Below, piece after piece: positions 10,791 to 44,100 of a stretch of 64,000 nt of DNA. Below the pieces are notes generated by a model, which was not told the origin of the DNA, ran no database searches, and was given only the letters and a program-made list of their open reading frames with translations. The stretch is from Paragordius varius (Eukaryota; Animalia; Nematomorpha): the NCBI GenBank assembly GCA_964247055.1, contig OZ176057.1, positions 6,138,001 through 6,202,000 on the forward strand. The letters are read 5' to 3'. Each line of letters begins with the position of its first letter. Within the stretch, counting starts at the first letter, position 1. The position numbers and the translations under genes are program-made.

Positions 10791-10800
10791 AATCAACATA

Positions 10801-16599: not shown

Positions 16600-16710
16600 A
16601 AGGTTTCGAGTTTGTGGGCTAGGGTTAGGGTGAGGGATTGGAGTTGGTTCATTTCCTTAAAGAAGTCCGCAGGACTTCCTCGGGCTGCGTAGCAGGCCGA
16701 GACCCACGCA
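16600..16710 (+). mobile_element. Best-preserved end of a dispersed non-autonomous repeat: G4 motif plus two hairpins (copies 32782-32892, 49049-49159 minus)
   Basis: GGGCTAGGGTTAGGGTGAGGG at 16616-16636, GAAGTCC-GCA-GGACTTC at 16662-16678 and CTCGGGCTGC-GTA-GCAGGCCGAG at 16679-16701. The same module occurs inverted at 7778-7860. Confidence 0.55.
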
Positions 16711-17412: not shown

Positions 17413-17485
17413 GCTAAGGTTAGGTTAGATATTAGAGTTGGTTCATTTATCTAAAAAAGTCCGCAGGACTTCTTCGGGCTGCGAA
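17413..17485 (+). mobile_element. Degenerate copy of the same G4/hairpin module
   Basis: gctaaggttaggttag...gagttggttcattt...aagtccgcaggacttcttcgggctgcg. Confidence 0.55.
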
Positions 17486-19034
17486 ACAGGCTAAGAACAT
17501 CCGTTGTTGTTTTAGATTTAAATTTAATTAAAATCACTATAACATCGCTCATATACAAATACAAAAATTAATTTTATCAAACAAGGATATTATTCCTAAC
17601 AAAACCATTTATGAAACCAAAAAATTGGTTATAATATAGTATTTTTATCACAAATAAAAATTCGAAATAGTTTAAAATAAATTTTTCAGATAATAGTAGT
17701 AGAACAAAATCAATATTGAAAGTTCAGCTCTATGTAAGGTATTGCAATTGTTTTAGGTTCAAAAGAAGACTTGTAAAGCAATAAAGTATTAAAATTTAGG
17801 TCAAAATATTTAATTTTAAGGATTGTAAATATCGGTGTTAATACTCTCAATATATATAATAAAGATTAAAAAATGAGGATCTGGTCAACTTGCATATATA
17901 TATATATTATATAATTTTATGAATATATAATTATTTAAAGCTTTTATTATTTTATTTTGGTATAATAGTGATTAATATTGGTAAGCAAATAACCTTGAAA
18001 TCATAATAATATTTACCCATATATATATATATATATATGAATGAGTTATCAGACCTTCACAGATATAATTACCCATGATGTAATATATAAGAGGCATCAA
18101 TACAATTTAAATATAAAATATCCATATTAAAAAAATTTATTTATATTCTCATCTTTATTGGAGTCAAAAATATTTTTGCCATACTACATAAATTATATTT
18201 AAACATCAACATTAACGATATAAGCTAATTTTATTTAAGTCCAAATTTTTTAATCCAAATTAATTTCTTTTATGCTAGGTGGTATTCATACATACATAAA
18301 TTCAAAAATTTGCTTCACAATACAAAATTACTCTTTCGGGCAGAATGGTTCATTATATGTTTACTTTGTTTCGAAAAAGTTATGGCATTTAGAATGCGTC
18401 GTTTAGTTGAAAATATTTTACAGTTTTCAATGGATTTACGAATTGAACAAACTAAAACTTCAACTTTATTCGAAAAGCAAATGTGGGCCTGATTCCGTAT
18501 CAAATATGGAAGTTAAGCGTAATATTTGGATCTTGCAGTATGTAGCAAATATAAATGTTATTTTTGTTTTTACAATTTTGACCTTTGTAAACTTTAATGA
18601 CAATCAATATATCTACCCCTTATTTTGCAATTGAAAATGTTTAAAATTTTTTGAAAAATCTTTTAAGTTTGCAAATATGGTTGCCATTTGTAAAAAAAAA
18701 TAGTTTTTATATTTTATAACGTATTTTCCGTGTATTTTTTAATATTTACTGTATATGTAACGATTTTGCTGATAAATATTTCACATATTTGTCTAATTCA
18801 CTTCCTTAACAAACCAACATTATTTCTAATTAAATCCTTTTTTATCATTTCCTGTTTTTTCTCTATATATCTGTGTAGGAAATCATAGGAACGAACATAT
18901 ATAATCAAAACAAGGCTTCCTCCCCGTTTTTGCGACAATGTTGCTGGCAAACAATGTCATTACATTATTCTTTAGTCTCATTACATAGGCCTTTTTCAAA
19001 TTTTGGCTATTGAATTTGCCTTCATTCCTACTCG

Positions 19035-19122
19035 ATGAAGATATTAAACAGATTTATTCAAATGTTGGCCAAGGATGAAAAGATTTGTGATATTGTGCGC
19101 AAACGGAAAAAGAATAAAAAAG
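19035..19122 (+). CDS. Candidate upstream exon of the Lys/Ser-rich gene (copies 35217-35304 and 46637-46724 minus)
   Basis: ATG...MKILNRFIQMLAKDEKICDIVRKRKKNKK then G|gtatta, a phase-1 donor compatible with the phase-1 acceptor at U905 of the next unit. Unverified. Confidence 0.3.
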
Positions 19123-19393
19123 GTATTATTCAAATAATATTTAAAATAAAATTTTTAAATGTGTTCAAGTTTGTTAACTTTGAAGATTTAAAATATACCT
19201 TTATTTACTGTGGCAAAGTTTATTACTTTTTGTAGTTTTGATTACCTTATCGAACTGTATGCGGGTAGATATGGTGGGATATATTGCACTTTAAGAGTGT
19301 CCTTGAACACTTCAGGTTTGTCCTTTGACTTTTTTGTTTTGTTTTTAACTTTTATCTTCCACTCGGACATCATTCAATTTTATCGTTTTTAAC

Positions 19394-20128
19394 TTATTTT
19401 TTATTTTAAATTTTAAATCAATATCAACTTCATGATTAAGCAAGTTAATCTTTATTAATTCCCTAAAATTATTTGGAATTTATAAGATTTTAACGACTAA
19501 TTATATATAAGTTTCTGGTTTATTATTACAATTTTTCATTGAAAACATGTTAAGTTATAATTTTGTTGGATTGGAAAAAATTATTTCATTAAAAAAGTGG
19601 TTTTTGAATAAATTATTTTTTTTAAATGAATAAATATATAATAAATAAACAGAATTAGGTTAAAAATTAATAAAATAAAACCTACATCCAAAAATTATGG
19701 TTAATACAAAATTTAAAAATTTTAAGGATTAACTTGAGGTGTTTAAGGACCAACTTGAAGTGTTTAAGGACCGAAGTGTTAAAGGACCAACTTAAAGTGT
19801 AACAACTTAGAGTGTCTAAAGAACTTAAAACGTTTATGGACACTCTGAATAATTTATTTATCACACAAGTCATAAATCAATATTGCAAATATTTTTTAGA
19901 TGAATTTTTTTAAACTATGTTATTGCTTTCACGGTTCCATTTAGGGTATCATAGTGTTCCATGCTCATTTTTGCTTCATTTTTTGTATCAAGCTACTGAT
20001 TTCAGTACTAAACGGTTTTTGCAAATCAAAATCATTATTAAAGTCCATTTAGCAGTTTATTTTATTATAAAACTTGATCACGAGAGATGCCTGAAGTCGT
20101 ATTATGCGTTAACATACATTCTTTCATT
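19394..20128 (+). repeat. Head-to-tail continuation of the unit (U1-735), cut by a gap
   Basis: Matches 1-735 and ends at the first N. Confidence 0.97.
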
Positions 20129-20329
20129 NNNNNNNNNNNNNNNNNNNNNNNNNNNNNNNNNNNNNNNNNNNNNNNNNNNNNNNNNNNNNNNNNNNNNNNN
20201 NNNNNNNNNNNNNNNNNNNNNNNNNNNNNNNNNNNNNNNNNNNNNNNNNNNNNNNNNNNNNNNNNNNNNNNNNNNNNNNNNNNNNNNNNNNNNNNNNNNN
20301 NNNNNNNNNNNNNNNNNNNNNNNNNNNNA
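20129..20329. other. Assembly gap (~200 N)
   Basis: Run of N. The near-fixed size suggests a scaffolding placeholder rather than a measured distance. Confidence 0.99.
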
Positions 20330-20348
20330 ATTTTTAATAAATACTAAC

Positions 20349-21378
20349 CAAAAATAGGGTTTCCCCTTAACGGATAGCCCCCAAGATTAAACACGTGTGA
20401 ATGGTCAGCTGTTACTATAATTAACGTTTCAGATTCATCAGCTGTCTTATTTTCTTCATCCAGATCAGCTGATTTTTGAGTTCGATCCACGAGGTAAGAA
20501 ACAACTTTTTCCAACTCTAGCGTTTCTTCCAAAGCTAGTCTGGCCTTCCCTTCATGATGTGCGTGATCTATGCGACTTCCTGGTAGTTTAAAATAAGATT
20601 GAAACTTTTAAATAAAGTTATACAAACAAAAAGACAAATAATTATTTAAAAGACAACAACCATACTTTTTACAACTTTTATTCTATATAAACTATTTTTT
20701 AATTAACTATGAAATATATTGTGTTAATTATCAACCTATTTCATAATTTGCGCATTTAAAGCAGTATAGCGATCTTGACCTATTTATCCTTTGAATAATA
20801 GCCAAAATTTCAAGGAGTCGAATTGAAAAAATTGCTAAAAATAATTTTATTTTGGCTAACTTATTGTATATGGAAAATAATAGTATTTTTTTGATTTTAT
20901 AGCTAATTTATTTTAAATTACAAAATAGATATAATAATTAAGAACGAAAAGGGCTAAAAATAATAAATGCTCCTATTTCAAACCCAAGCAAATTAATTTT
21001 TTGTTTTGGTTCCTATTGTTTTTTGCTAATATGTGTTGATAATTTGTATTGTAATGATTATTTAATAAGTCACAGTTTGGTGTACACTATTACTTGAACA
21101 ATTAAAATAAACCATTAAATAAAAAAATATTTAAAAATAAAACAATCAATATATTTTAAAAAAACAAAAGTTATATTTTCAGATATACGGTTTAAATTTT
21201 TAAAATTAAATGAAAATTATCGATATATCATATATACCTTCGACCAATAAAAAATATCCGGCGTCGTCTTTGTTGGATAAAATGTCAACTGCTTTGGTGA
21301 CCATTTCAAGCAAAGTCGGTTCAGAACTACTCGCCTCTTTTTTCGATACGTAACTCATGAGATCGTGGGCAAACAAGC
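20349..21378 (-). CDS. ALP: Alkaline phosphatase exons (copies of U4167-4397 and U5056-5196)
   Basis: Identical copy at +16182: exons 20349-20579 and 21238-21378. Confidence 0.88.
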
Positions 21379-24300
21379 CTGTGTTACAGTGAGGGGGAAT
21401 ATTACAAATATTTTGCACAGTTAATAATATACCCTCCTCAAATTTTCAAAAGCATCTATGCACACGTCAACCTAAATTAAATTTATAATTTAATATACTG
21501 TGCAAGTTTGTAAGCCAAAATCAGCGATTTGCTCAACAATATTTTAGCATAATTGGTGTTTCTGGCAAATTATATATCCCACATCTTAGGAATAATTTAA
21601 AATTTTGAAGTAAAATGACATGATATCCATTTATTATGTATTTGATAATAGAATTTCCAAATATTTTTTCATTATTAAGAAGGCTAAGATTTCCGTGGAA
21701 TAACTTTGAATTGACAATGACATCGGTATAATCGGAGTGATAACCAGATGAATTAAATGAACTTGTGCGTTCCATGTGCAAAATTTAATATATCATATTT
21801 ATGCAGGCAATACATTAATTATATAGCACCCCATATAAAATATATTAGCATATTCCAACCAATTCCGCTGATTTAATAGTTAAAGAGAGCATATAACATA
21901 GAATTGAGCTAATAAAGAAAATCAAAATTAATTAAAAAGAAGATCTAAGGACAAGCTTAAGTGTTTACAGAATTGTCAGTTTATGTAATTTGCAATTTGG
22001 AAAACCAGAGTACATATAATATGGATTTATTGAGTGGTTTGAGCACCTATGATTGCAATCAGAAAAATATTTATATGTAAATGCTGATTGAAAAACCTAA
22101 TTTGAAGGCTTTAGGCCTTCTTCTCCAATGGCAACCAGGGATGGGGACGTGAATCAAGACTATCAACCATGGATTGTTACGCGAATCAAGGAACGAACCG
22201 AAGGGATCTTTTATGAGGTAAATCTATCATTTAGGTGTGATCTCCGCGGGAAAAGCGTACATTACGGAATCTAGAAGCCCTGGACAGATCAAATGCTGGG
22301 GATTTGGGACTGGACGATTGATGGAGCGACACAGGAAGAGGAACCTACTAATTGCGAGGTAATCTTAATTTTTAGGTCTGGGTGGACTTTGGCACATTGG
22401 GGAGGAGAGATCTGTTGGGATGAAGCTCTTGGGAATGTCCAGATGGGGAGAAGGCAAATCGTGCCTGGAGCTGATGGATGGCAAGACGCACTCAAGTATC
22501 TCATTGGGGATGATTGCACAACAAACTCTCATTATACTTGTGGAGAGTTTTTGGGCCAAATGACTCTCTAATGGGAGGAATAAATCCTCCTTTACAAGGG
22601 TGGGGAAAATGAGCTCGTTTGAAAGAGTTTTTTTCCTTACTTGTGTTAAGGAGCATTTATTTCTCCCATTAGAGAGTTGGCGCAAAAACTCTCCACAAGT
22701 ATAATGAGAGTTTGTTGCAGGCCCGCAAGTCCAAAATTGTATTTTGAGCACTCTTACTCCCGGACGCTCAAAATAAAATTTTGGACTTAGAATATTTTTT
22801 AATTTTTTTTCTCGCCCTTTGGGGGGGGGGGGGGTTATATATATTTATTTATATTTTTTAATTTTTTTTTAATCAAAAAATCATAATAAAATCAGGATTA
22901 TTTATTAACAAATATTATTATTTAATATTAAAAATATCATTCTTGTCTAGTCTTGAGTTATTCTTGATTTTCTGTCAATTTGTTATATCCAGTTTTTGTA
23001 TCATTTTTGAATATTCATTTATCGTTGTTGAGATTATTTAGATAGTTTCAGAATCTATAAAATTGTTTTTATTTATTTATAAAAAATATTCATTTTCTTT
23101 GATATAGTATCTTGTCTAGTTAGCTCTCATGATTTTGGGTCAATTCATCATTTTAATTAATTTCATATATTATTAATACTTTAATCCTAAATAACAAAAG
23201 AATTATATGAAATTTATCCTAAAAAATTTAAAGTTTTAAAGAAATTAGCTGTTTATGTCAGAGGTTTTTGCGATAATAGCGGAAAAATTAGCGTTAAAAA
23301 TGTTTGTGATAAAGTTCGAACTTAAAACCTGAAACAACCAATACATTAATAAATTTACCGACTTTTTTAAGAACTTTACCCTAACTTAAACCTCGAAACC
23401 CTAAATGTAGTTAAAAAGAGTTTTTTAAAAAAATCAAAAACCTTAATAAAGAGAGGCTATTTTTGTGAGAAGAGAAAAGTCAGAAAAAATAGAAAATGAC
23501 CTGCTCCCTATTTCAAAGTAATGGCTATCATTAAAAAAAGGAAATTCAGAGATTTAGTTAGGTTATATAAATTTATAAATGAACCAACTCCAATCCCTCT
23601 CCCTAACTCTAGCCCACAAACTCAAAACCCTTAAAGTGGTTTAAACCGAGATCGATAAAAATTTTACTCAAAAACCGAAATATAAACTTAAAATCTCAAA
23701 ATAGGTTTTAGAGATAAATATTGAGGTTTTTAAAACCAGCTGTATTTGAATAAAGATATCAGTAATATAATCTGTTAAAAAAAACTCTGGTTTTCAAACA
23801 AAATAGAGTCTTTTATTATTATAGATAAAATAATTAACAAAAAAAATAGGTCAGAAATTATAAAAAATGAGAATAATGTGCTCCCTATTTTATAATTATG
23901 AATATCATTTAAACCAATCTGCAAAATTCTGAGACAAAGATTTAATTTAAAAAGAAACCGAGGAAGTCCTGCGGACTTCTTTAAGAAAATGAACCAACTC
24001 CAACCCCTCACCCTAACCCTAGCCCAGAAACTCGAAAAACCTTATAGTTCTTTAAACCTAAATCAATAAATTTTGCTCAAAAACCATAATAACAGCTTTA
24101 AAGGGTCATAAGAAATGAGATAAAGATTTACTCACAAGTATTAGCGGTAATAGGTTAGAGTTTAACATTGACGTTTTGTAAATTTAAATTTTAAACCAGC
24201 TTAAACGACTCATATTACACCAAAAACACGTGATACTTTAATCCTAATAAAAAGAATTGTATGAAATTTATCCTAAAAAATAAAAAGTTTCAAAGAAATC

Positions 24301-26982
24301 AGCTGTCTATGTCAGAGGTTTTTGCGTAAATACCTCAAACAACCAATATATAAATTAATTTGCGGACTTCTTTAAGAACCTGACCCTAACTTAAAACTAG
24401 AAACCATAAATGTAGTTAAAAAAGAGTTTTCTAAAAATTTTATTCAAATATAATCAAGAGAGCATTTTTTTGTTAGAAGAGAAAAGTCAAAAAAAAGGTT
24501 ATATAAATTTATAGAATAGAAATGCGCTCCAATCCCTCACCCTAACCCTAGCCCACAAACTCGAAACCCTTAAAGTGCTTTAAACCTGATTAATTAAAAC
24601 ATCTGATTCTTAAAAACAAATAATAATTAAAAACAACAGATTTATTAAAACAACTGATTTATAAAAACAACTGATTGATATAAACAAACGATAAATTAAA
24701 ACAAACGATAAATAAAAACAACTGAAGAACTGATTAATGATAAATAATCATTTAAATACAAATAATTAATAAACACAAATAATAAAACTTATTAATTAAA
24801 ACAACTGATTAATTAAAACAACTGATTAATACAACAGATTTATCTGAATAATAAGGAAAAAATAAAAAATATTTATACAATTGGTTATTAATAACGTAAA
24901 AAGTAACTAAAAATATATACGTAAATAGTTTAATTGGTATGGCAGCAATGAAGTGGATACTATATTGTTTCCTAAAAATAAAATAAAATATAAAGTCAAA
25001 ACAAATAATCACATAAAAATAAATATCTTGAAACTATTAAATAATTATAGGTATCAAATTCAAAAAACAGCTGATCAAGAAAAATGGTTATTTAAAAAAA
25101 TTTATAAAGTTTGTTATAAAAAAGTGATATTTTGTTATTTTGCGGTAAAAATTAAAGGAACAATATTATATATCTTAATAAAAATAACTAATTTGTTTTA
25201 AATCAAAAATTTATTATAAATAGTTAATTTATTAAAAAAATGATTAATTAAATCAATTATATTATTATATATGCAATAATTCAGCAAAAATTATATAAAT
25301 TTATTATAATATTTCGATTACTACAGGTAATCTTTGTCAAACGTAAAAATAAAATTAAATTCTTTAATTAAAGAGCATTAAAATCGACTCATCAATTTTA
25401 TTAAAAAAAGTAGTTATTTTGAGAAAAAAATGTAAAGTTGAAAAACTAGTAAAAAAATCTGTTCTAAAATTTAATCTAAATATAATTAATTACCAAGTTC
25501 ATCCATAATATTCAATTACGCTTTTTCAATAGACTTCGTTTACGTTTCGGGCTGCTGATTACATAAACAACACATTCTACAGTAAATTAAAGAAAAATGT
25601 AATAATTAAGGATTAAATATTATGTTACAATAATAAATAAAAAAAATTTACAAACGATAGAAAATTTATATTCTACATACTCTACATATTCTTTTTAAAA
25701 AAATTTCAACTATCTTTAGAATATCTCAAGTTAACCAATTGAAAACAACTGTAAGATAAAACCAATTATTACAAACTGATTAAAAACAACTAATAAACAG
25801 GTGATAAATGCTAATTACATAAAAAAAGTTGATTATGATAATATGGATTTATACAGAATTTATAAAACAAAACAATTGGATTAACAAAAATACTTAAATA
25901 ATATTCAAAATTTATCAACAAAATATAAAATAATAATTACCCAATTCCCAAAACATTCCAGGTATTTCTACATCAGTTTTGTTGAAGTCAGTCCTGCGTA
26001 CTTCTGTAAGACATCACACATTCTAAACAAAAAAAATAGTATGTTACAATATATTGAGATTAATATTATAAAAATGCTATTTAAAATGGCTAGCTAATTG
26101 GTTAAAATAATAAAATTTATAAAAAAAAAGGTGGCATATGTTTGCAGAAAAACAATTTTGCGGTTTTAAAAAAGTTTGCCATTTTTTAAAGAATTTCAGC
26201 GCATTTTTGATTTAAAAAGAATATTTACGCTTTTTAAACAATATTGAAAGTTTTTAGAGAGCTTTAGTGGTTTTTAGAAAACTTTTAGGGATTTTAAATT
26301 TTTTAGCAATTTTAAGAGAATTTCAAGCGCATTTGTTTGATTTAAAAGGAATTTTAGCTATATTTTAAAAATTTTAGCATTTTAAGAAAGTTTTAGCGGT
26401 TTTAAGGAAGTTTTATCATTACATTGTTATCCGGTTATTAAATTGTAACCGGTTTTTAGAATATTTCTAAAGAAGTAGACTTTTAGCTGGTTGGAGCGTT
26501 TTTAGAAAGTTTAAGCGGTTTTAGAAAATTTTAGCGGTTTTTAGAGAATTTCAAACGCATTTTTTATTTAAAAGGAATTTTAGCGGTTTTTAGAAAGTTT
26601 TAGAGGTTTTTAAGAAATTTTAGCAATTTTTAGAGAATTTCAAACTTTTTTGATTTAAAAGGAATTTTAGCGGTTTTTATAAGGTTTTAGCGGTTTTTAT
26701 AAGGTTTTAGCGGTTTTTATAAGGTTTTAGCGGTTTTTATAAGGTTTTAGCGGTTTTTATAAAATTTTAGCGGTTTTTAGGAAATTTTAGCGATTTTAAG
26801 AGAATTAAACGCATTATTTTGAGTTAAAAGGAATTTTAGCGATATTTTAAAAATTTTAGCCATTTTTAGGATGTTTTAGCGGTTTTAAAGAGAGTTTTAG
26901 CGGTTTTTTAATTCGGTTTTTAATATAACTTTTTAGATAGTTTTGGCGGTTTTTAGATAAACTTATAATTATAATCAACATA

Positions 26983-28354
26983 ATAAAAAAAACTGATTAT
27001 AAGAACTGATTAATAAAAACAACTGATTTATAAAAACAACTGATTTATAAAAACAACTGATTTATAAAAACAACTGATTTATAAAAACAACTGATTTATA
27101 AAAACAACTCATTTATAAAAACAACTCATTTATAAAAACAACTCATTTATAAAAACAACTGATTTATAAAAATAACTGATTTATAAAAACAAATGATTAA
27201 TAAAAACAAATGATTAATAAAAACAACTGATTAATACAACTGATTAATAAAATCAACTGATTAATAAAATCAACTGATTAATAAAATCAACTGATTAATA
27301 AAATCAACTGATTAATAAAATCAACTGATTAATAAAACAACTGATTAATAAAATCAACTAATTAATTAAAACAACTGATTAATAAAAACAACTGATTAAT
27401 AAAAACAACTGATTAATAAAAACAAATGATTAATAAACACAACTGATTAATAAAAACAACTGATTAATAAAAACAACTGATTAATAAAAACAACTGATTA
27501 ATAAAAACAACTCATTAATTAAAACAATTGTAATTAAAAACAACTGATTAATAAAAACAACTGATTAATAAAAACAACTGATTAATAAAAACAACTGATT
27601 AATAAAAACAACTGATTAATAAAAACAACTGATTAATAAACACAACTGATTAATAAACACAACTGATTAATAAAAACAACTGATTAATAAAAACAACTGA
27701 TTAATAAAAACAACTGATTAATAAAAACAACTGATTAATAAAAACAACTGCTTAATAAAAACAACTGATTAATTAAAACAACTGATTAATTAAAACAACT
27801 GATTAATTAAAACAACTGATTAATTAAAACAACTGATTAATTAAAACAACTGATTAATTAAAACAACTGATTAATTTAAACAACTGATTAATTTAAACAA
27901 CTGATTAATAAAAACAACTGATTAATCAAAACAAATGAATAATTAAAATAACTAGTTGAATAAAAACAACTGATTAATAAAAACAACTGTTTAATTAAAA
28001 CTGATTAATAAAAACAATTGAATAATTAAAATAACTAGTTGAATAAAAATAACTGTTAATAAAATAAATGATTAATAACAACTGATTAATAAAAATAACT
28101 GATTAATTAAAACAACTGATTAATTAAAACAACTGATTAATAAAAACAAATGATTATTTAAAACAATTTAAAACAACTGATTAATAAAAACAACTGATTA
28201 ATAAAAACAACTGATTAATAAAAACAACTGATTAATAAAAACAACTGATTAATAAAAACAACTGATTAATTAAAACAACTGATTAATTAAAACAACTGAT
28301 TAATTAAAACAAATGATTACTAAAACAATGATTAATAAAAACAACTGATTAAAA
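26983..28354. repeat. 17-bp minisatellite, copy
   Basis: Copy at +16182. Confidence 0.96.
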
Positions 28355-28881
28355 ATCTTTTAAAATTATTTTAAAAAATTCAACGGTTTCAATAATGTTA
28401 AATATATATTTTAAAATAAAATTTCTGTTTAATATAACTATAATAATAAATTACTTATTTGAATTATAAAACAGTAAAAAAATTACCGAATTCCGAAATA
28501 TCAAGTTAAAATCTATTCATTTATGATTCGTTTCAGTTTTTCCGCAAATAATTGATTGAGGCAATACATTCTAAAAAAATAAATATATAAATTGATAAAT
28601 ATAAACGATTAATTACAATATAATAATTCAAAAAAACGCTATTTAAGAATGAATGATATGTTTTGTGTTTAAATATTTAAAAAACCGATTTGCGGACATT
28701 TTATTAAGCAATTTTGTAGAATTGAGTGAAGTCATATATACAATTTAAGCATTTTTCAAAAAACTTGCGATTTTTAGGCAATTATTATTATCTACAACAT
28801 TTGGATTTATAGGCATATTTTTAACTAATTTTTACCTAATTATAAGTATATTTTTAGCAGATTATAAGTATATTTTAACTG

Positions 28882-29802
28882 ATTTTAAGGAAATTTTTAG
28901 CAAATATTAACAAAAGTTTAATCGATTTTTAACAAATATTAAGGCAACTTTAACCGATTTTTAGCAAATTTTAAGGAAACTTTAACCGATTAGCAAATTT
29001 TAAGGAAACTTTAACCGATTTTTAGCAAATTTTAAGGAAACTTTAACCGATTTTTAGCAAATTTTAAGACAAATTTTAACCGATTTTTAGCAAATTTTAA
29101 GAAAACTTTAACCGATTTTTAGCAAATTTTAAGGAAACTTTAACCGATTAGCAAATTTTAAGGAAACTTTAACCGATTAGCAAATTTTAAGGAAACTTTA
29201 ACCGATTATTAGCAGATTTTAGAAATGTTTAACCGATTTTTAGCAAATTTTAAGGAAACTTTAACCGATTTTTAGCAAATTTTAAGAAAACTTTAACCGA
29301 TTAGCAAATTTTAAGAAACTTTAACCGATTTTTAGCAAATTTTAAGGAAACTTTAACCGATTTTTAGCAAATTTTAAGAAAACTTTAACCGATTTTTAGC
29401 AAATTTTAAGGAAACTTTAACCGATTAGCAAATTTTAAGGAAACTTTAACCGATTAGCAAATTTTAAGGAAACTTTAATCGATTTTTAGCAAATTTTAAG
29501 GAAACTTTAATCGATTTTTAGCAAATTTTAAGAAAAGTTTAATGGATTTTTAGCAAATTTTAAGAAAACTTTAACGGATTTTTAGCAAATTTTAAGGATA
29601 CTTTAACCGATTTTTAGCAAATTTTAAGGTAACTTTAACCAATTTTTAGCAAATTTTAAGGAAATTTTAACCGATTTTTAGCAAATTTTAAGGTAACTTT
29701 AACCAATTTTTAGCAAATTTTAAGAAAACTTTAACCGATTTTTAACAAATTTTAAGGAAATTTTAACCGATTTTTGAAATTTACAACCTTTAACCAATTT
29801 TT
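28882..29802. repeat. 32/29-bp minisatellite, copy
   Basis: Copy at +16182. Confidence 0.95.
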
Positions 29803-32800
29803 ATAACTTCTAATTGATTTTTAAACAATTTCTCACTTTTTTTAACAAACTTTTAACAGTTTTTAATAATTTTAGTATATATTTGCGAAACTTTAAAACC
29901 ATTTTTATTATTTTTTAAACTACCTTAAGAAGTTTTATGCATGAAAAAATAGAAGACATGAAAAGAAGGCGTTATATCAATGAATAAACGTCAGAAAATC
30001 CCAAGAAACCAATTTGTTGTGCATATTTAAATACTAGGAATTTTTTAGAGGAGAGGTGGCCAACACGCTGCTCTCCAAAATATTGAGACTGCACGAGTTT
30101 TAAGAAAATTTAAGGGAAATTCACTATCTTAAACAAATTTCTGAACGGAATTTTAAGGAATTTTGACAATTTCCCAAAAAATGATAATAAAATAGTGGTT
30201 TCTACAGCATCATTTTTTATATCTAATAAAATTTTAGTTAATGCGGCCCGCGAAGCCATATAATATGAATTTATTTGTTAAGAAATTAAATTTTATAGGA
30301 CAAGCATGCACAATAACAACATAAGTACGTACACCTTTATATGTTAACATTTCCTCTCCCTTATCAAAATTTTTTTACATGATTTTAGAGAAAAAAATTC
30401 AATACAAAAATATTTTACCAAGTGCTAAATATGTAAAATTATTTTAAATTGCAAGGATATTTTAGATTTCAAAACAGGCAAGCATCTAAATAATTTTAAC
30501 AAATGTTCACCTTTCTATTTATTTCATCTTCCTTAAACAAATGAAAAAAAAATAAATTATAAAAGATCAAGAAACCCACTTGTTAGCAATATATTACTAT
30601 AGTAATTAAACATGTATTTATTTTTTTAAAAAAAATGGAAAATTACAGTATAATTAAAAAAATATTACTGGGTTTGTGTTAATGTATTTGCCAGATAGAA
30701 TTCTCAATTAAATTATAGGCTAATAGCAAGAAAAGATTCTTCTTGTTGAAGTCAATAAATGTTCTTTACTATCAATCGTATCTGACAATATTTTAATGCA
30801 AACCCAGCAATGCATTTGTAATTATACTGTATATATATATATAAAACATGCAAAACTTACATATATTGTTTGATGATTACAATTTTATTGGAACGAATTT
30901 TCCCATCATTTCAGTCGTATAATATCAACCATGTTTGCAATAATTTGTCTTTTAATTGGTGGTTATATTGTACATTGTTTCTAGGATTAGGTTGGACAGT
31001 TTCCTTTTTTTTCAATTAACAATGGTAGTATTCTAATAATTAAATAAAAACAATTTACTTTATATAGATAGTAATGGCAATACATTGTATAGCAAAGGGA
31101 AGTTGCATATGCACCCAATCTATCCACAGGATCTCAAAAAATGTGCGAGGAAAAAAAAATTAAATAAATCAAAAAAAGTAAAATTTTCGCCCTTTATATA
31201 GGCCGAAATGTATATGTAATCTTTTTATCCAATCAAATTAATGTGTGCATTTGCGCCTTTTTCTCCCCCCTTCTGGAAAAATGTTTCTTCACATATCTTT
31301 CGTTTCCCTCTCTTATTATTCCTATTATGTATTATATTACTTATTCCCTCCCTTTCTTTACTGCGCATTAACATTGTTTGGGCGCCTCTATTTTATTATT
31401 CCCTCTCCCCCCCATGTGCACATTCCAATAAAACATATTACATTATAATATAGCATCCATCCATCCATCATATATATATAAATAAATCTTTTTTCATTAT
31501 TACAATAATAATGTTATTTGGCTGGCGCCTATAAAGAATGTAAATCGTATTCAGAGAAAAATATGTTAAAAAAATATGGCAATAATATTTTAACAATCTC
31601 CCTCTCTCTATTAATAATAAATGATAAATTTAAATTTATTTTCATACTTGAATGTTTGATTACACAAATGGCTAATATCATCAAAAATTAATTAATTAAT
31701 TAATTAATCTAATTTGTTTCAATATTAAAATAACAAATTTTAATAGAGGTATTTAAGTTTTAACCTGTGTAATTTGATTAATATATTGGTTCATAATTTA
31801 GTGATCTTGGAATTTTTTTTCTAAAATAACGCAGATGGTTTTTAAAAAGTTTATAGATTATTATCTAAAAGATTTATAATTATTTTAATTTTATGCTTTG
31901 TGCAATCAACTAATATCAATTTAATGTTAAAATCAAATACATCATATAATAAGCTTTCAACAACAAGAGCTCTGATTTTTTTGGATTTCCATTTCATTAA
32001 AATCAATCATCACAGATAGTTTATTTAGGTAAAAGATATTTAAAGTGTGCTTACGATAATTACCAATATATGATAATTCTCTATTAATTTATACTAATAT
32101 ATATATTAATTTTAAAATGGGAATCAATCAAATATAAGTTATTATTCTGTTTTAATTCAATTAAAAAAATATGTAAATAAGATTGAAAATAAGTTATGTC
32201 CTGTGGGGATAAGGGTTAAGGTAAGAAGTTTGGTTTCAGTTTTTAAACAGAAAGCTGAAAATCTGTTTTTCATTAAGAGTTATCTGTATTAAACCAAAAT
32301 TTAAACTTTTTTTATAGCATAGAACGATACAGAATATCTGGGAATGGCTAACTTAACATTCAATAACCTTTAAAAGTGTAATAATTCTCAATTGAGAAAT
32401 GGTTGAATCCTAACAATTTTATTTAAAATTAAAACATCGTTCATGCGAAAATGTCTTTAGAATTAAACAGGAATCAACAGTTTAGGTTAAATATTAACTA
32501 ATCTTTCAAAAATCAATCAAAAGAGTTTCTTCATTTAATAATTATGTATAACCACACGACAATAACATGAACTAACTAAAACACGATATCAATGTTGGAT
32601 AAAAATATCAATAAATTCCTCAACTTTTTTAATAATTAGTTCCCGTTAGCTGAAAAAGCTGAATATAAATCTTATTTTAAAACAATAGGCATTTCAAATT
32701 CTTTACTACGATTTAAAAAACCAATAAAAATATTTGGTTATATGGTAAAAAATGTAAATTATTTCAATCCTTAGTTTATGTAAGGTTTCGAGTTTGTGGG

Positions 32801-35800
32801 CTAGGGTTAGGGTGAGGGATTGGAGTTGGTTCATTTCCTTAAAGAAGTCCGCAGGACTTCCTCGGGCTGCGTAGCAGGCCGAGACCCACGCATTTTCTTT
32901 TTACTTATACCTTATATTTATGGTGGATAATTATGTACTTGAATATAAAAATATCATTTTAACATTATTTATAATAGAGAGATAGGTAAAATATGTTGAA
33001 TTGTTTTAGGAAATAATTAGAGATCGGTGTAAAGAGCATTGGATACATTAAGCTATAAGGAATTACAAAGATTACATAATGTTTACATTTAATTTTTATT
33101 ATCCAAATCTTAATATATATATTATATAGTTTAGGCATAGTTATATAATTTTTATCTACTTTAATGAAAATGTGTTGGCTAAAAATTATTGGCAAGTATT
33201 CTGCTAATTATATATTGATTTTCAAATAAATAAAACTTTTCCAACAAATCTTATATTATTTTTAGATGTTTTTTTAAAAAATTAAAAATTAATTACTATT
33301 TAAAACTAGAATGCTTTGTCCAAACTAGACCACTTAAATTTAAAAATAGGAAATTAATGATAAACATAGCTAAATTCAAAAATTATTTCTTTTTTAATTG
33401 TATATTCATGGCATTATAAGTTTAATTATTAAAAATTTTAGGTTTCTGCAGGAAAAATTGTGCATTGCTCTAAGTTACATGGTGTCAAGAATAAAATGTT
33501 AAATAAGGAAATTATATTTAATCATTAATATATGTGCAAGATTTATTTATATGTTTTTGGCGTCAAATAAGATTCATAGAAATTTTATTTGTAAGCTAAG
33601 GTTAGGTTAGATATTAGAGTTGGTTCATTTATCTAAAAAAGTCCGCAGGACTTCTTCGGGCTGCGAAACAGGCTAAGAACATCCGTTGTTGTTTTAGATT
33701 TAAATTTAATTAAAATCACTATAACATCGCTCATATACAAATACAAAAATTAATTTTATCAAACAAGGATATTATTCCTAACAAAACCATTTATGAAACC
33801 AAAAAATTGGTTATAATATAGTATTTTTATCACAAATAAAAATTCGAAATAGTTTAAAATAAATTTTTCAGATAATAGTAGTAGAACAAAATCAATATTG
33901 AAAGTTCAGCTCTATGTAAGGTATTGCAATTGTTTTAGGTTCAAAAGAAGACTTGTAAAGCAATAAAGTATTAAAATTTAGGTCAAAATATTTAATTTTA
34001 AGGATTGTAAATATCGGTGTTAATACTCTCAATATATATAATAAAGATTAAAAAATGAGGATCTGGTCAACTTGCATATATATATATATTATATAATTTT
34101 ATGAATATATAATTATTTAAAGCTTTTATTATTTTATTTTGGTATAATAGTGATTAATATTGGTAAGCAAATAACCTTGAAATCATAATAATATTTACCC
34201 ATATATATATATATATATATGAATGAGTTATCAGACCTTCACAGATATAATTACCCATGATGTAATATATAAGAGGCATCAATACAATTTAAATATAAAA
34301 TATCCATATTAAAAAAATTTATTTATATTCTCATCTTTATTGGAGTCAAAAATATTTTTGCCATACTACATAAATTATATTTAAACATCAACATTAACGA
34401 TATAAGCTAATTTTATTTAAGTCCAAATTTTTTAATCCAAATTAATTTCTTTTATGCTAGGTGGTATTCATACATACATAAATTCAAAAATTTGCTTCAC
34501 AATACAAAATTACTCTTTCGGGCAGAATGGTTCATTATATGTTTACTTTGTTTCGAAAAAGTTATGGCATTTAGAATGCGTCGTTTAGTTGAAAATATTT
34601 TACAGTTTTCAATGGATTTACGAATTGAACAAACTAAAACTTCAACTTTATTCGAAAAGCAAATGTGGGCCTGATTCCGTATCAAATATGGAAGTTAAGC
34701 GTAATATTTGGATCTTGCAGTATGTAGCAAATATAAATGTTATTTTTGTTTTTACAATTTTGACCTTTGTAAACTTTAATGACAATCAATATATCTACCC
34801 CTTATTTTGCAATTGAAAATGTTTAAAATTTTTTGAAAAATCTTTTAAGTTTGCAAATATGGTTGCCATTTGTAAAAAAAAATAGTTTTTATATTTTATA
34901 ACGTATTTTCCGTGTATTTTTTAATATTTACTGTATATGTAACGATTTTGCTGATAAATATTTCACATATTTGTCTAATTCACTTCCTTAACAAACCAAC
35001 ATTATTTCTAATTAAATCCTTTTTTATCATTTCCTGTTTTTTCTCTATATATCTGTGTAGGAAATCATAGGAACGAACATATATAATCAAAACAAGGCTT
35101 CCTCCCCGTTTTTGCGACAATGTTGCTGGCAAACAATGTCATTACATTATTCTTTAGTCTCATTACATAGGCCTTTTTCAAATTTTGGCTATTGAATTTG
35201 CCTTCATTCCTACTCGATGAAGATATTAAACAGATTTATTCAAATGTTGGCCAAGGATGAAAAGATTTGTGATATTGTGCGCAAACGGAAAAAGAATAAA
35301 AAAGGTATTATTCAAATAATATTTAAAATAAAATTTTTAAATGTGTTCAAGTTTGTTAACTTTGAAGATTTAAAATATACCTTTATTTACTGTGGCAAAG
35401 TTTATTACTTTTTGTAGTTTTGATTACCTTATCGAACTGTATGCGGGTAGATATGGTGGGATATATTGCACTTTAAGAGTGTCCTTGAACACTTCAGGTT
35501 TGTCCTTTGACTTTTTTGTTTTGTTTTTAACTTTTATCTTCCACTCGGACATCATTCAATTTTATCGTTTTTAACTTATTTTTTATTTTAAATTTTAAAT
35601 CAATATCAACTTCATGATTAAGCAAGTTAATCTTTATTAATTCCCTAAAATTATTTGGAATTTATAAGATTTTAACGACTAATTATATATAAGTTTCTGG
35701 TTTATTATTACAATTTTTCATTGAAAACATGTTAAGTTATAATTTTGTTGGATTGGAAAAAATTATTTCATTAAAAAAGTGGTTTTTGAATAAATTATTT

Positions 35801-36479
35801 TTTTTAAATGAATAAATATATAATAAATAAACAGAATTAGGTTAAAAATTAATAAAATAAAACCTACATCCAAAAATTATGGTTAATACAAAATTTAAAA
35901 ATTTTAAGGATTAACTTGAGGTGTTTAAGGACCAACTTGAAGTGTTTAAGGACCGAAGTGTTAAAGGACCAACTTAAAGTGTAACAACTTAGAGTGTCTA
36001 AAGAACTTAAAACGTTTATGGACACTCTGAATAATTTATTTATCACACAAGTCATAAATCAATATTGCAAATATTTTTTAGATGAATTTTTTTAAACTAT
36101 GTTATTGCTTTCACGGTTCCATTTAGGGTATCATAGTGTTCCATGCTCATTTTTGCTTCATTTTTTGTATCAAGCTACTGATTTCAGTACTAAACGGTTT
36201 TTGCAAATCAAAATCATTATTAAAGTCCATTTAGCAGTTTATTTTATTATAAAACTTGATCACGAGAGATGCCTGAAGTCGTATTATGCGTTAACATACA
36301 TTCTTTCATTTCAAATTATGTTGCTAATAATCGGCTTTGATATTAAACTTTATTTTATGTAAAAAAATATAACTAACCTATAAAATTTTGAAACTATGGC
36401 AGAAATTTAGCAATATTCCAAAAAATTTACTTAGATATAAAATTTACCTTAATATAAAACCAAATTGCTTTTGCCCTAG

Positions 36480-37238
36480 GTACAGGTTATCAGCCAGTCC
36501 CCTCAAGCAGTCCAGGAGGTAGTACGACGACCCCAGAATTAAACACGCCACCTAATGAATCTCGTGATTCCGATGATGAAAAAAAGCGTAAAAAAGGAAG
36601 CAGTCATCACAAATCAAAGAGTAGAGGCGATGATAAGGGAACCTCCAAAAAAAGCTCAAAACATGACATTGATGGTATGGATTTATATGGAATTTGTGTT
36701 CATCTAAAATCTTAGTAGATTTATTTTACATGCTGTGTTTGCTAGTCCAATAAGAATATATGTCTGTATAAAGGGGTTTTTTGTAAGTTTCAATAAAATT
36801 TTTGAATAAAATAAAATTTTTGTAAGGAGAGTTTTTACGAAAGTTACAATTCATGGTTAAAAGGATCTGAAATTGGTATCTTTTATGTTAAAAAGTTTCG
36901 TCACTATTCCCTTGCTTTGCAACATACTATGATGGATACTAATTAGACTGATTAACAATATAATTTACCCTAAATCATTTACATATTTAGTAGACAAAAA
37001 AGCCAAGAAAAAAGAAAGTGGCATTAAAATTAGTGCATCAGGGACAACAGACAAAAAATCAAGTAAAACGAAAGATTTGACAAAATCCTCGTCGTCTGGA
37101 ACCAAAAAAGATAAAAAAACCTCTAAAAGTGGAAAACGGGATGAATCACAATCTCCGGCACCCGCAAGTGATTCCAAAGACAAACAAAAGAAAAAAGATA
37201 AAGCCTCGCCTGATAATAAGAAGAAGGGCAAAAAATAG
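36480..37238 (+). CDS. Lys/Ser-rich gene 3' exons, copy (36480-36674, 36991-37238)
   Basis: Copy at +35575. Confidence 0.8.
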
Positions 37239-37705
37239 TGTTTTAACTTTGTTTTTAGGACCGGTCTAGTCCTTAAGATTTGATTGGAACTTGTAATTTT
37301 TAAGCGTTTACTTCATGCATATATCTATCAATTCAAAAGAATTATGTTAAAATAAAGGCCATTTTATACGCATATGATATTTGTAAACTAATGTTTTATT
37401 AGTTGTTAAGATTATCACAAACCTTAAAAACTTTTATTGTTTTGATATATTAAACAGCTATTTGAGTATCAAATCATATTTTACAATATTACTATGATCT
37501 TATATTATATGGACACTAAAATTTTTTTGCCAAAGAATTGAATGTAAATATTAACTAGAATTGTTACCCAAATATAACACTTTTGCAATTTATTCATAAT
37601 ATTTTAATAAATGATATATTGATTTATATAAACTATATAATAGCACAAAAAAGCTAAGAAATTTATAATTTTGGTGTGTTTGAAAAAAATAAAAAATAAA
37701 ATAAA

Positions 37706-39434
37706 TTATTTTGAGCAATGTTTTTCGTGGATGTAAGGACCAACACAGCTGGCATACGACATGGCGTGATTTATGTAATGTTGTTCAAACGTTCCACTAA
37801 ACAAATGAGCATTCCGTCCTAAGCAATATCGTATTCGAATATAAGTACAGTAAAAAGTTAAATTATACGGACAGACAAAACGTAAAACATATGTATGTCT
37901 TTTTTTAAAAGACAACCATACTTTTTAAATTTTGATTTTTTGAAATATAAATCTGTTTAAAATTGCAAAAAACAAATAAGGTAATCCCTTAGTAAACAAC
38001 GACAGACATTATGAAACTTTAAATTATAAGGACAAACTTAAATACACTATGGTCAAGTTTATATTACTGGAAAGCTATAAATTATTGCCAAATAGCATAT
38101 GTAGCAAAGAGAATTATTTGATAGTAAAAAGTAAAAAAATAACTATAAGCCAATAATACTGCCCTTTGTTGTATATGTTATTTAGCAACAAAGTCAAATA
38201 GTTTTTTTAACAATATCTTTTTTTAGAACTGATTGTTTAAAGTGATATTTAAATGATAAATATTTTTTTACATATTTTTATATAATAAACTAATGTTAAA
38301 AGTATGGTGTTTTTCGAATAAAAATTGTCATTACATTTTTACCTTTTACCCGCATAATTTCAATTTTGCTTTATATCTATGTAACTCAACGATCTAAATA
38401 AGTTTTAAAAAAATTTAATAAATATTTTTATATTTTTTTCCTAAAACACTTTTATAGAAATGTTTAAATGAAAATTTTGTTTTATAAATACCTATTGCAT
38501 ATACAGGCACATCTTCGCCTCCATGACTTTCCTCACTTAAAGGTATAGCAGCTTGAGCTTGATAATCGGGATCATCTGATAAAAATTTATTAATACTAAA
38601 TTTAATAAAGTTTATATTCCTACAAAGTAAAATTCGACATATATTTTAGTGAAAATTTGAATTTTGTGATCTTTTTACGTTCAAAGATTATTAGTTATTA
38701 AAATTTATGTTTAAAATAATTTCCATTATGTTGAAGTACCAATTTATACTTTGTTTTACCAAAAGACAACCATATTAAATCTTAAAACTGTGTAATAACT
38801 CTTTTAGTATGTTTTGCCCTCTGAAATATAAATTTTATAAAAATTGTAACAGCAAAAATTAAAATTATAAAAATCAATCATAAATGCTAAAAGACAATTA
38901 ATTTTAGCCATACTTTTCTAACCCTCAATTTTATGATTAAGAAATATAGAAATGTATATTAGTGGCACAATCAATTACAGTGTGCATTTAAAAGATCGAA
39001 AAAAAAGAAAGAAATAATTGTTTATTCAACATTTAGTTACACTATTGTGGATATTGCCCCCAACTATAGAGCTGTGAAATAAGCAAGCATCATAATGCAT
39101 ACTGTATTTATTTACATTTTATTTACGTTATATTATCATAAAAAACTCTTTGTAAGAAACATATGTGTTTTTAGGTTTTGTCTTTATAACTTACAATTAT
39201 TTTTTTTTCAAATTAAATTTTAAGATTGAAATAAAGAATGTTGTATTATTATGGCAGTTACAAAACAACTTCATAGATGTAAAAAACCAATTTTTGTGTT
39301 TCTAACATCGGGCCTTTGGTTATATATTTTAGTGTTTAGCCCGCCAGGTCCGTTCCCATACGTTAGCGGTGTATAAGGCATATCATCTACATCCGATAAT
39401 TCAAATTCCCGCGTTAGATATTCTCGGTTTAAAC
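37706..39434 (-). CDS. ALP: Alkaline phosphatase, last three exons (39288-39434, 38492-38575, 37706-37818)
   Basis: Identical copy at +35575. The upstream exons sit at the other end of this contig. Confidence 0.88.
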
Positions 39435-39721
39435 CTAAAATTTAAGGTATTAAAAAAGCATGTCCTGTGAAAAGTCAATTTAAGGTTCTTTGTTAGGAAA
39501 TATTATAATAAAACATTTTAATATGTTAAAAACAGCAAATATTACATATTTATTAGAAGGATTAAATAACCAAATATTATAAGTATTCCATTCCGTTCCA
39601 AAAAAATTAAAAAAAAGAAAGGACTGATCTCATCAAAATCGGTTCTGGTTCCAATGCCTGAATATGTATTTATTCTTTTTCATTAAACATGTGATTATAT
39701 AGTACAGGGTATATAAAGCAA

Positions 39722-39921
39722 NNNNNNNNNNNNNNNNNNNNNNNNNNNNNNNNNNNNNNNNNNNNNNNNNNNNNNNNNNNNNNNNNNNNNNNNNNNNNNN
39801 NNNNNNNNNNNNNNNNNNNNNNNNNNNNNNNNNNNNNNNNNNNNNNNNNNNNNNNNNNNNNNNNNNNNNNNNNNNNNNNNNNNNNNNNNNNNNNNNNNNN
39901 NNNNNNNNNNNNNNNNNNNNN
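39722..39921. other. Assembly gap (200 N)
   Basis: Run of N. Confidence 0.99.
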
Positions 39922-41169
39922 TCTTTCAAACGAGCTCATTTTCCCCACCCTTGTAAAGGAGGATTTATTCCTCCCATTAGAGAGTCATTTGGCCCAAAAA
40001 CTCTCCACAAGTATAATGAGAGTTTGTTGTGCAATCATCCCCAATGAGATACTTGAGTGCGTCTTGCCATCCATCAGCTCCAGGCACGATTTGCCTTCTC
40101 CCCATCTGGACATTCCCAAGAGCTTCATCCCAACAGATCTCTCCTCCCCAATGTGCCAAAGTCCACCCAGACCTAAAAATTAAGATTACCTCGCAATTAG
40201 TAGGTTCCTCTTCCTGTGTCGCTCCATCAATCGTCCAGTCCCAAATCCCCAGCATTTGATCTGTCCAGGGCTTCTAGATTCCGTAATGTACGCTTTTCCC
40301 GCGGAGATCACACCTAAATGATAGATTTACCTCATAAAAGATCCCTTCGGTTCGTTCCTTGATTCGCGTAACAATCCATGGTTGATAGTCTTGATTCACG
40401 TCCCCATCCCTGGTTGCCATTGGAGAAGAAGGCCTAAAGCCTTCAAATTAGGTTTTTCAATCAGCATTTACATATAAATATTTTTCTGATTGCAATCATA
40501 GGTGCTCAAACCACTCAATAAATCCATATTATATGTACTCTGGTTTTCCAAATTGCAAATTACATAAACTGACAATTCTGTAAACACTTAAGCTTGTCCT
40601 TAGATCTTCTTTTTAATTAATTTTGATTTTCTTTATTAGCTCAATTCTATGTTATATGCTCTCTTTAACTATTAAATCAGCGGAATTGGTTGGAATATGC
40701 TAATATATTTTATATGGGGTGCTATATAATTAATGTATTGCCTGCATAAATATGATATATTAAATTTTGCACATGGAACGCACAAGTTCATTTAATTCAT
40801 CTGGTTATCACTCCGATTATACCGATGTCATTGTCAATTCAAAGTTATTCCACGGAAATCTTAGCCTTCTTAATAATGAAAAAATATTTGGAAATTCTAT
40901 TATCAAATACATAATAAATGGATATCATGTCATTTTACTTCAAAATTTTAAATTATTCCTAAGATGTGGGATATATAATTTGCCAGAAACACCAATTATG
41001 CTAAAATATTGTTGAGCAAATCGCTGATTTTGGCTTACAAACTTGCACAGTATATTAAATTATAAATTTAATTTAGGTTGACGTGTGCATAGATGCTTTT
41101 GAAAATTTGAGGAGGGTATATTATTAACTGTGCAAAATATTTGTAATATTCCCCCTCACTGTAACACAG

Positions 41170-44100
41170 GCTTGTTTGCCCACGATCTCATGAGTTACGT
41201 ATCGAAAAAAGAGGCGAGTAGTTCTGAACCGACTTTGCTTGAAATGGTCACCAAAGCAGTTGACATTTTATCCAACAAAGACGACGCCGGATATTTTTTA
41301 TTGGTCGAAGGTATATATGATATATCGATAATTTTCATTTAATTTTAAAAATTTAAACCGTATATCTGAAAATATAACTTTTGTTTTTTTAAAATATATT
41401 GATTGTTTTATTTTTAAATATTTTTTTATTTAATGGTTTATTTTAATTGTTCAAGTAATAGTGTACACCAAACTGTGACTTATTAAATAATCATTACAAT
41501 ACAAATTATCAACACATATTAGCAAAAAACAATAGGAACCAAAACAAAAAATTAATTTGCTTGGGTTTGAAATAGGAGCATTTATTATTTTTAGCCCTTT
41601 TCGTTCTTAATTATTATATCTATTTTGTAATTTAAAATAAATTAGCTATAAAATCAAAAAAATACTATTATTTTCCATATACAATAAGTTAGCCAAAATA
41701 AAATTATTTTTAGCAATTTTTTCAATTCGACTCCTTGAAATTTTGGCTATTATTCAAAGGATAAATAGGTCAAGATCGCTATACTGCTTTAAATGCGCAA
41801 ATTATGAAATAGGTTGATAATTAACACAATATATTTCATAGTTAATTAAAAAATAGTTTATATAGAATAAAAGTTGTAAAAAGTATGGTTGTTGTCTTTT
41901 AAATAATTATTTGTCTTTTTGTTTGTATAACTTTATTTAAAAGTTTCAATCTTATTTTAAACTACCAGGAAGTCGCATAGATCACGCACATCATGAAGGG
42001 AAGGCCAGACTAGCTTTGGAAGAAACGCTAGAGTTGGAAAAAGTTGTTTCTTACCTCGTGGATCGAACTCAAAAATCAGCTGATCTGGATGAAGAAAATA
42101 AGACAGCTGATGAATCTGAAACGTTAATTATAGTAACAGCTGACCATTCACACGTGTTTAATCTTGGGGGCTATCCGTTAAGGGGAAACCCTATTTTTGG
42201 TTAGTATTTATTAAAAATTTTGCTTTATATACCCTGTACTATATAATCACATGTTTAATGAAAAAGAATAAATACATATTCAGGCATTGGAACCAGAACC
42301 GATTTTGATGAGATCAGTCCTTTCTTTTTTTTAATTTTTTTGGAACGGAATGGAATACTTATAATATTTGGTTATTTAATCCTTCTAATAAATATGTAAT
42401 ATTTGCTGTTTTTAACATATTAAAATGTTTTATTATAATATTTCCTAACAAAGAACCTTAAATTGACTTTTCACAGGACATGCTTTTTTAATACCTTAAA
42501 TTTTAGGTTTAAACCGAGAATATCTAACGCGGGAATTTGAATTATCGGATGTAGATGATATGCCTTATACACCGCTAACGTATGGGAACGGACCTGGCGG
42601 GCTAAACACTAAAATATATAACCAAAGGCCCGATGTTAGAAACACAAAAATTGGTTTTTTACATCTATGAAGTTGTTTTGTAACTGCCATAATAATACAA
42701 CATTCTTTATTTCAATCTTAAAATTTAATTTGAAAAAAAAATAATTGTAAGTTATAAAGACAAAACCTAAAAACACATATGTTTCTTACAAAGAGTTTTT
42801 TATGATAATATAACGTAAATAAAATGTAAATAAATACAGTATGCATTATGATGCTTGCTTATTTCACAGCTCTATAGTTGGGGGCAATATCCACAATAGT
42901 GTAACTAAATGTTGAATAAACAATTATTTCTTTCTTTTTTTTCGATCTTTTAAATGCACACTGTAATTGATTGTGCCACTAATATACATTTCTATATTTC
43001 TTAATCATAAAATTGAGGGTTAGAAAAGTATGGCTAAAATTAATTGTCTTTTAGCATTTATGATTGATTTTTATAATTTTAATTTTTGCTGTTACAATTT
43101 TTATAAAATTTATATTTCAGAGGGCAAAACATACTAAAAGAGTTATTACACAGTTTTAAGATTTAATATGGTTGTCTTTTGGTAAAACAAAGTATAAATT
43201 GGTACTTCAACATAATGGAAATTATTTTAAACATAAATTTTAATAACTAATAATCTTTGAACGTAAAAAGATCACAAAATTCAAATTTTCACTAAAATAT
43301 ATGTCGAATTTTACTTTGTAGGAATATAAACTTTATTAAATTTAGTATTAATAAATTTTTATCAGATGATCCCGATTATCAAGCTCAAGCTGCTATACCT
43401 TTAAGTGAGGAAAGTCATGGAGGCGAAGATGTGCCTGTATATGCAATAGGTATTTATAAAACAAAATTTTCATTTAAACATTTCTATAAAAGTGTTTTAG
43501 GAAAAAAATATAAAAATATTTATTAAATTTTTTTAAAACTTATTTAGATCGTTGAGTTACATAGATATAAAGCAAAATTGAAATTATGCGGGTAAAAGGT
43601 AAAAATGTAATGACAATTTTTATTCGAAAAACACCATACTTTTAACATTAGTTTATTATATAAAAATATGTAAAAAAATATTTATCATTTAAATATCACT
43701 TTAAACAATCAGTTCTAAAAAAAGATATTGTTAAAAAAACTATTTGACTTTGTTGCTAAATAACATATACAACAAAGGGCAGTATTATTGGCTTATAGTT
43801 ATTTTTTTACTTTTTACTATCAAATAATTCTCTTTGCTACATATGCTATTTGGCAATAATTTATAGCTTTCCAGTAATATAAACTTGACCATAGTGTATT
43901 TAAGTTTGTCCTTATAATTTAAAGTTTCATAATGTCTGTCGTTGTTTACTAAGGGATTACCTTATTTGTTTTTTGCAATTTTAAACAGATTTATATTTCA
44001 AAAAATCAAAATTTAAAAAGTATGGTTGTCTTTTAAAAAAAGACATACATATGTTTTACGTTTTGTCTGTCCGTATAATTTAACTTTTTACTGTACTTAT

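Follow-up and report, generated by a model that had tools for sequence, protein, structure and literature searches.

The middle contig of a 64,000-nt window from the genome of Paragordius varius is very probably the assembler's one-turn writing of a very recent chromosomal head-to-tail repeat with a period of 19,393 bp. The window, by which we mean the whole stretch of DNA analyzed here (C8:6138001-6202000), lies on scaffold C8 of an assembly that comprises 110.5 Mb in 44 scaffolds with a GC content of 25%. Plain numbers below are window positions, whereas U denotes the repeat unit, numbered as in an earlier note on this DNA, so that U1-19393 corresponds to window positions 1-19393. The unit carries a fragment of an ALP gene, satellites, and a GC-rich repeat element, and the contig in question, contig B, stands between contigs A and C (Table 1).

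The course of events that we infer is as follows. The repeat would have been born within an older array of 25-27-kb paralogous units, by unequal exchange between neighbors, with one breakpoint inside the GC-rich, foldback-bearing element and the other at its edge; two exchange events would be the minimum. Since the stretch over which the copies are identical exceeds typical accurate long reads in length, reads inside the repeat would form a cycle in the assembly graph, yielding a contig of exactly one period (contig B), alongside which a slightly longer linear piece (contig A) would be emitted. Contigs A and B would then have been inserted into a cut of the contig that crosses the array.

One rotated unit and its chromosomal flanks

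Two runs of 200 N each interrupt the window. That these are masked stretches rather than gaps was ruled out, since the U coordinates jump at every run. Contig A repeats itself, with positions 1-735 recurring exactly as 19394-20128, which gives the period of 19,393 bp. Contig B, of equal length, corresponds to U after a rotation by 4,146 bases, with a single mismatch (36776; T>G at U1201); one difference per 19,393 bases cannot be a chance match. The closing join of contig B, AAAGCAA/AATTTTT, gives back AAAGCAAAATTTTT with all four A's as in contig A, and the closure is exact. The earlier note had placed exactly one circularized unit at 20330-39721 and had read it as a cyclic contig of a perfect repeat. 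Both the single unit and the cyclic reading stand, but the true start is 20329 (U4147), and the "3 A instead of 4" described at the closure was a counting slip, no base being missing there. Its observation that the ALP exons are in order only when contig B is circularized also holds: the intron separating exon 2 from exon 3 contains the cut, so that exons 1 and 2 are followed, after the wrap, by exons 3, 4, and 5.

We examined 324 kb around the window on scaffold C8. Only three N gaps occur in this region, all within the perfect repeat, the third one (200 N at C8:6135023-6135222) lying 2.8 kb left of the window. The scaffold thus contains four contigs of U, in the order and orientation Z(-), A(+), B(+), and C(-). 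Contig Z runs in reverse and reaches up to C8:6135022, 2,978 bp short of the window; its perfect stretch consists of U6445-19393 and U1-5307. Contig A is 22,906 bp long (1.18 units), starts at C8:6135223 (2,777 bp left of the window), and consists of U16616-19393, the full unit, and U1-735. The terminal base of contig Z is U6445 and the first base of contig C is U6444, a consecutive phase with a chance of ∼1 in 19,393. We therefore conclude that contigs Z and C are one sequence that was cut once and that contigs A and B were placed in the cut. Joined, contigs Z and C make up 1.95 units passing through the array.

The repeat is a chromosomal tandem array by two further observations. Units stand head to tail within single contigs, with a period of 19,393 bp in contig A and of 19,396 bp in contig C, the latter because a poly-G run is longer there. 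Furthermore, the repeat is anchored on both sides: contig Z leads into a diverged block, Q, then into older units and the complete ALP gene, and contig C leads into another diverged block, P, then into a partial unit and 140 kb without U homology. Taken in U orientation, contig C followed by contig Z reads P (up to U6200), M, R, M, and Q (from U5308), where M is the perfect sequence U6201-19393 plus U1-5307 (18,500 bp) and R is U5308-6200. The two M blocks continue differently, one into R and the other into Q, and are thus distinct copies on the chromosome, each joined to a flank of its own.

In the whole assembly, 100% matches to U are confined to contigs Z, A, B, and C, and a whole-assembly search found no extra U contigs among the unplaced scaffolds. 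The assembled total is 4.1 unit-equivalents, with at least two chromosome-anchored perfect copies. The segment U14000-15700 has four perfect copies in the whole assembly, all of them on this scaffold, and the high copy number that the earlier note had considered is not supported by the assembly.

Age of the repeat and its exchange junctions

The assembled copies differ at just two places. U1201 is T in contig A only and G in contigs B, C (45165), and Z, and the copy adjoining P (contig C, 59121-59123) has three additional G in the poly-G run at U6631-6644. The three satellite blocks are identical, length included, in all assembled copies. We therefore conclude that the duplication is very recent, in line with the recent amplification that the earlier note had suggested. 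The private T in contig A marks either a third copy or another allele.

Toward P, the 100% identity gives way to 93% precisely at U6200/6201 (59562), an exchange junction to which we refer as J1. The switch from perfect copy to paralog at this position had been recognized before, and the accompanying proposal of an exchange inside the GC-rich paralogous segment is borne out by the hybrid junction left at the array edge. Beyond the 88% paralog of the ALP 3' region (Table 1) lies an 83% paralog of U463-1118, and the older array ends at C8:6202714, about 700 bp past the window. On the Q side, identity falls at U5307/5308 to about 94%, followed by older units at 81-92%. This older array starts from the complete ALP gene at C8:6032331 and has a unit spacing of 25-27 kb, with the 3' half of ALP at the start of each unit and the GC-rich element at the end. 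The older units are longer than U mainly because their satellite blocks are longer; the 17-bp satellite occupies about 10 kb in them versus 1.4 kb in U.

This arrangement resembles nonallelic homologous recombination (NAHR) in the abrupt switch between paralog and perfect copy inside a shared repeat (U6200/6201) and in the spacing of the paralogous positions, which equals the period. Unlike the outcome of a single NAHR event, however, the block that is perfect at a lag of 19,393 bp spans 18,500 bp, 893 bp short of the unit, and its central repeat, R, is a third paralog. The origin of the unit by one recombination between the two flanking GC-rich copies, as put forward earlier, does not agree with these data. 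We considered R as a hybrid of P and Q and rejected it: R shares 95.1% identity with Q, 92.3% with P, and 95.8% with O1, which is the copy of the GC-rich element in an older unit farther to the left, and there are about 16 shared sites at which R departs from P and Q alike. Judging from the sequence, at least two exchanges, or one exchange plus conversion, would be needed; R-M could, for instance, have been duplicated first, with a P x R crossover at U6200 thereafter.

Both exchange end points lie within the GC-rich element or at its edge. In addition, two older units share a 2.8-kb block of 98.6% identity (C8:6087885-6090670 and C8:6114487-6117267) that is centered on this element. The two GC-rich elements show 100% identity over U5560-6690, and the rest of the units ∼90%. 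The block looks like a gene-conversion tract centered on the GC-rich element, so that exchange or conversion appears to recur there.

Circle, false duplication, or longer array

Reads that do not extend beyond a perfect repeat form a cycle in overlap and string graphs, and from this cycle a one-period contig is emitted, often with an end-overlapping linear companion. Contigs B and A resemble the cyclic contigs that assemblers produce from organelles, plasmids, and perfect repeats, with one period, an arbitrary start, and an end-overlapping linear companion. We found nothing citable in the literature on cyclic contigs generated by assemblers from tandem repeats. Unlike organelle or plasmid contigs, contig B lacks tRNA and rRNA and contains spliced nuclear gene fragments, and a mitochondrial or plasmid origin of a 19.4-kb circle with 25% GC was rejected on these grounds. 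None of the contigs resembles human DNA.

Contig B might instead be real extrachromosomal circular DNA (eccDNA) of one unit, popped out between identical neighbors, coexisting with the chromosomal copies and abundant enough to be assembled. It closes perfectly on itself, and the ends of contig A match as well, its first 3,513 bases recurring at its end. Like the tandem-repeat eccDNA of PMC3225859, where circles of exact repeat multiples are described as common, it has exactly the length of one chromosomal unit and falls into the size class of such circles; unlike them, it is known from sequence alone and is indistinguishable from the chromosomal array. Excision between identical units leaves no diagnostic junction, however, and none is present in contig B. 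Every adjacency of contig B is also found in the anchored contigs, with its closing point, U4146/4147, lying inside contig C (42219-42220) and inside contig A. Exchange at J1 would have freed a different circle, carrying the old P-side block. The assembly holds neither a circle junction nor copies in excess of those on the chromosome, the unplaced scaffolds contribute no additional U contigs, and a perfect tandem repeat by itself suffices for a cyclic contig. With the unit anchored in the chromosome on both sides, the contig is not evidence for the eccDNA that the earlier note had offered as one of two readings, and we consider such a circle very unlikely.

Regarding the number of copies, we lean slightly toward more than two on one chromosome. 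It is rather unlikely, but deserves consideration, that only the two anchored copies (P-M-R-M-Q) exist and that contigs A and B are redundant or allelic, being leftover or other-haplotype contigs stacked by scaffolding. Contigs Z and C abut exactly, so an uncut contig already crossed the array; the variant states of contig B (G at U1201 and a short poly-G run) are those of the Z-side copy; and contigs A and B are opposite to Z and C in orientation, as would be the case for contigs that could not be oriented. Such a false duplication has to contend with the T at U1201 in contig A, which occurs in neither anchored copy and so represents at least a different allele, and with the fact that a contig was cut to insert A and B, which suggests outside evidence for further copies. 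At the other extreme, a collapsed amplicon would have tens of perfect chromosomal copies, of which four were assembled. An assembler cannot count perfect units that are longer than the reads, and elsewhere in the genome, arrays of this unit family comprise about 8-10 or more units; nevertheless, the sequence gives no sign of anything beyond 4.1 unit-equivalents, and with just two variant sites among the copies we regard a collapse on this scale as improbable.

Several points weigh against our interpretation of contig B as an assembler loop drawn from a recent tandem duplication. The behavior of the assembler and the copy number are deduced from the assembled sequence, and polishing with multi-mapping reads, if used, could have made the identity of the copies partly artefactual. 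The T at U1201, present only in contig A, means that this contig is no simple re-copy of Z plus C. Moreover, the assembler model does not account for the position of the cut between contigs Z and C. The cut (U6444/6445) falls within the 21-nt loop between the foldback arms U6381-6427 and U6449-6495, for which the chance is about 0.1%, and no hairpins were found at the other contig ends (U16616, U735, and U4147). A strong palindrome may have affected the reads or the assembler at this point; alternatively, the site could be truly fragile. A bolder reading would make the GC-rich foldback a break or recombination hotspot of an actively turning-over macrosatellite, the array being caught while expanding. 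Unit circles would then arise as intermediates or by-products, and the break in the loop would be a fragile or processed site; this we find very doubtful.

Content of the unit and its family

The five ALP exon open reading frames (ORFs) of U are all on the minus strand. They were searched singly by reference, and the coordinates in Table 1 are ORF bounds, not splice sites. U4165-4425 and U2134-2349 were matched to solved TNAP chains, and U3699-3866 was recognized by the YGNGPG motif of TNAP. U holds only positions 219-405 of PF00245 plus the C-terminal exon and thus lacks the complete domain. What the earlier note took for an ALP gene in the unit is merely a 3' fragment, the N-terminal catalytic half being present only in the complete gene 100 kb upstream. 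The assembly contains two apparently complete animal-type ALP genes (C8:6032331-6042270 and C6:6435427-6444536), and PF00245 positions 2-149 match solely C8:6032331-6035063 and C6. The older array begins with the C8 gene, whose 3' half is copied into every unit and to which the homology of U stops at U5253. The rightmost unit of the array appears to have lost the first two exons of the ALP fragment.

Table 1. Positions of the assembly pieces, repeat elements, and ALP exons in the window, and of related arrays elsewhere
Feature	Position	Strand	Remarks
Contig A, part in window	1-20128	+	Full unit U (1-19393), then U1-735
Scaffold gap A/B	20129-20328		200 N; U735 then U4147, a real discontinuity
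Contig B	20329-39721	+	U4147-19393, then U1-4146; exact rotation, mismatch at 36776
ALP exon 2 in B	20347-20607	-	U4165-4425; Pfam 262-329; TNAP residues 316-383; TADHSH motif
ALP exon 1 in B	21209-21445	-	U5027-5263; Pfam PF00245 positions 219-264
GC-rich element in B	21452-22882		U5270-6700; noncoding dispersed repeat, in every family unit
Foldback, about 200 nt	22515-22719		U6333-6537; then 62-nt hairpin (U6545-6606), then poly-G run
Three satellite blocks in B	26498-29803		U10316-13621; 20 bp x19, 17 bp x82, 32 bp x29
ALP exon 5 in B	37709-37924	-	U2134-2349; TNAP residues 448-483
ALP exon 4 in B	38418-38645	-	U2843-3070; Pfam 369-405; HGGEDV motif
ALP exon 3 in B	39274-39441	-	U3699-3866; YGNGPG motif region, recognized by motif only
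Scaffold gap B/C	39722-39921		200 N
Contig C, perfect part	39922-59561	-	Reverse complement of U, from U6444 to U1, then from U19393 to U6201 (1.01 units)
P, old paralog of GC-rich element	59562-60251	-	Equivalent to U6200 to U5513; 93% identity
Old paralog of ALP 3' region, 88%	61820-63632	-	U3206 to U1411; last, partial unit of older array
Family array	C7 8.52-8.73 Mb		About ten units, 19-33 kb apart
Family array	C8 5.28-5.52 Mb
Family array	C4 1.21-1.34 Mb
Family array	C9 3.48-3.57 Mb
Family array	C1 14.58-14.67 Mb

The GC-rich element is also present at 5270-6700 and 40166-41096, and its GC content reaches 46%. It has no Pfam matches. We tried it as a set of exons with two 17-nt "introns" and rejected this possibility, given the absence of a Pfam match and of a third-position excess and the presence of frame-breaking indels: paralogs differ by 4-nt and 8-nt indels in the putative frame, without codon periodicity. 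The stretch U6320-6620 (301 nt), which contains both hairpins, folds with -98.6 kcal/mol (z = -18.5). Comparison of the element with Rfam gave only sub-threshold hairpin look-alikes, namely, snoR125, at 31 bits where the gathering score is 100, and families of miRNA precursors. The element is possibly a remnant of a foldback or MITE-like (miniature inverted-repeat transposable element) transposon or a hairpin-RNA locus.

Among the satellites, the 17-bp repeat is TAATAAAAACAACTGAT (10799-12170), with a 51-bp relative at U8406-8543 (8404-8661). Its long relatives occur in other arrays, at C2:15.011-15.016 Mb, and at C8:6.053-6.057 Mb. Two Lys/Ser-rich open frames without Pfam match (883-1137 and 1358-1660) lie on the + strand, opposite to the ALP fragment and a short distance downstream of it; they may be terminal exons of the gene that neighbored ALP before the duplications. 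No tRNAs were found in U, nor were there Rfam matches at the gathering score. Contig B is overlapped by five ORFs of at least 90 amino acids, two of which run through an N gap and one of which extends into contig C. Identity between U and the older units is flat at about 0.9-0.96 and gives no guide to further exons.

Beyond this array, the GC-rich element and the segments U7200-9100, U14000-15700, and U16300-18800 match regularly spaced arrays at 72-90% identity (Table 1), in which the units measure about 20-33 kb; family members outside the 324 kb were compared by match tables only. Among the arrays of the unit family, ALP pieces occur only in that of the window. The GC-rich element alone is found in single copies on C2, C5, and C9 and at C8:0.67 Mb. 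Judged by these matches, very large tandem units form a family across the genome, of which U is the youngest member and, here, one that has captured a gene fragment. Several neighboring units in other arrays obtain identical scores when compared with U, a hint that local duplication has been very recent there as well.

The human TSPY/DYZ5 array is a macrosatellite with units of about 20 kb. The array described here resembles it in its head-to-tail units of ∼20 kb, in its near-identical central versus diverged edge copies, in the gene or gene fragment inside the unit, and in the presumed mechanism, unequal exchange. It differs in that U contains a truncated 3' half of ALP, satellites, and a foldback-bearing repeat and in that several arrays of the U family exist, spread over at least five scaffolds.

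The assembly at this locus should be taken neither as four ordered copies nor as a circle: toward the end of scaffold C8, the copy number is uncertain and the contig orientation arbitrary over a length of about 40-80 kb. These points are modest and leave current understanding unchanged. For the biology of this family, the locus provides a clean case of a young duplication inside an older array, with visible exchange junctions, a truncated ALP copy, and identical satellites, in a very AT-rich genome that holds a family of unusually large tandem units across several scaffolds.

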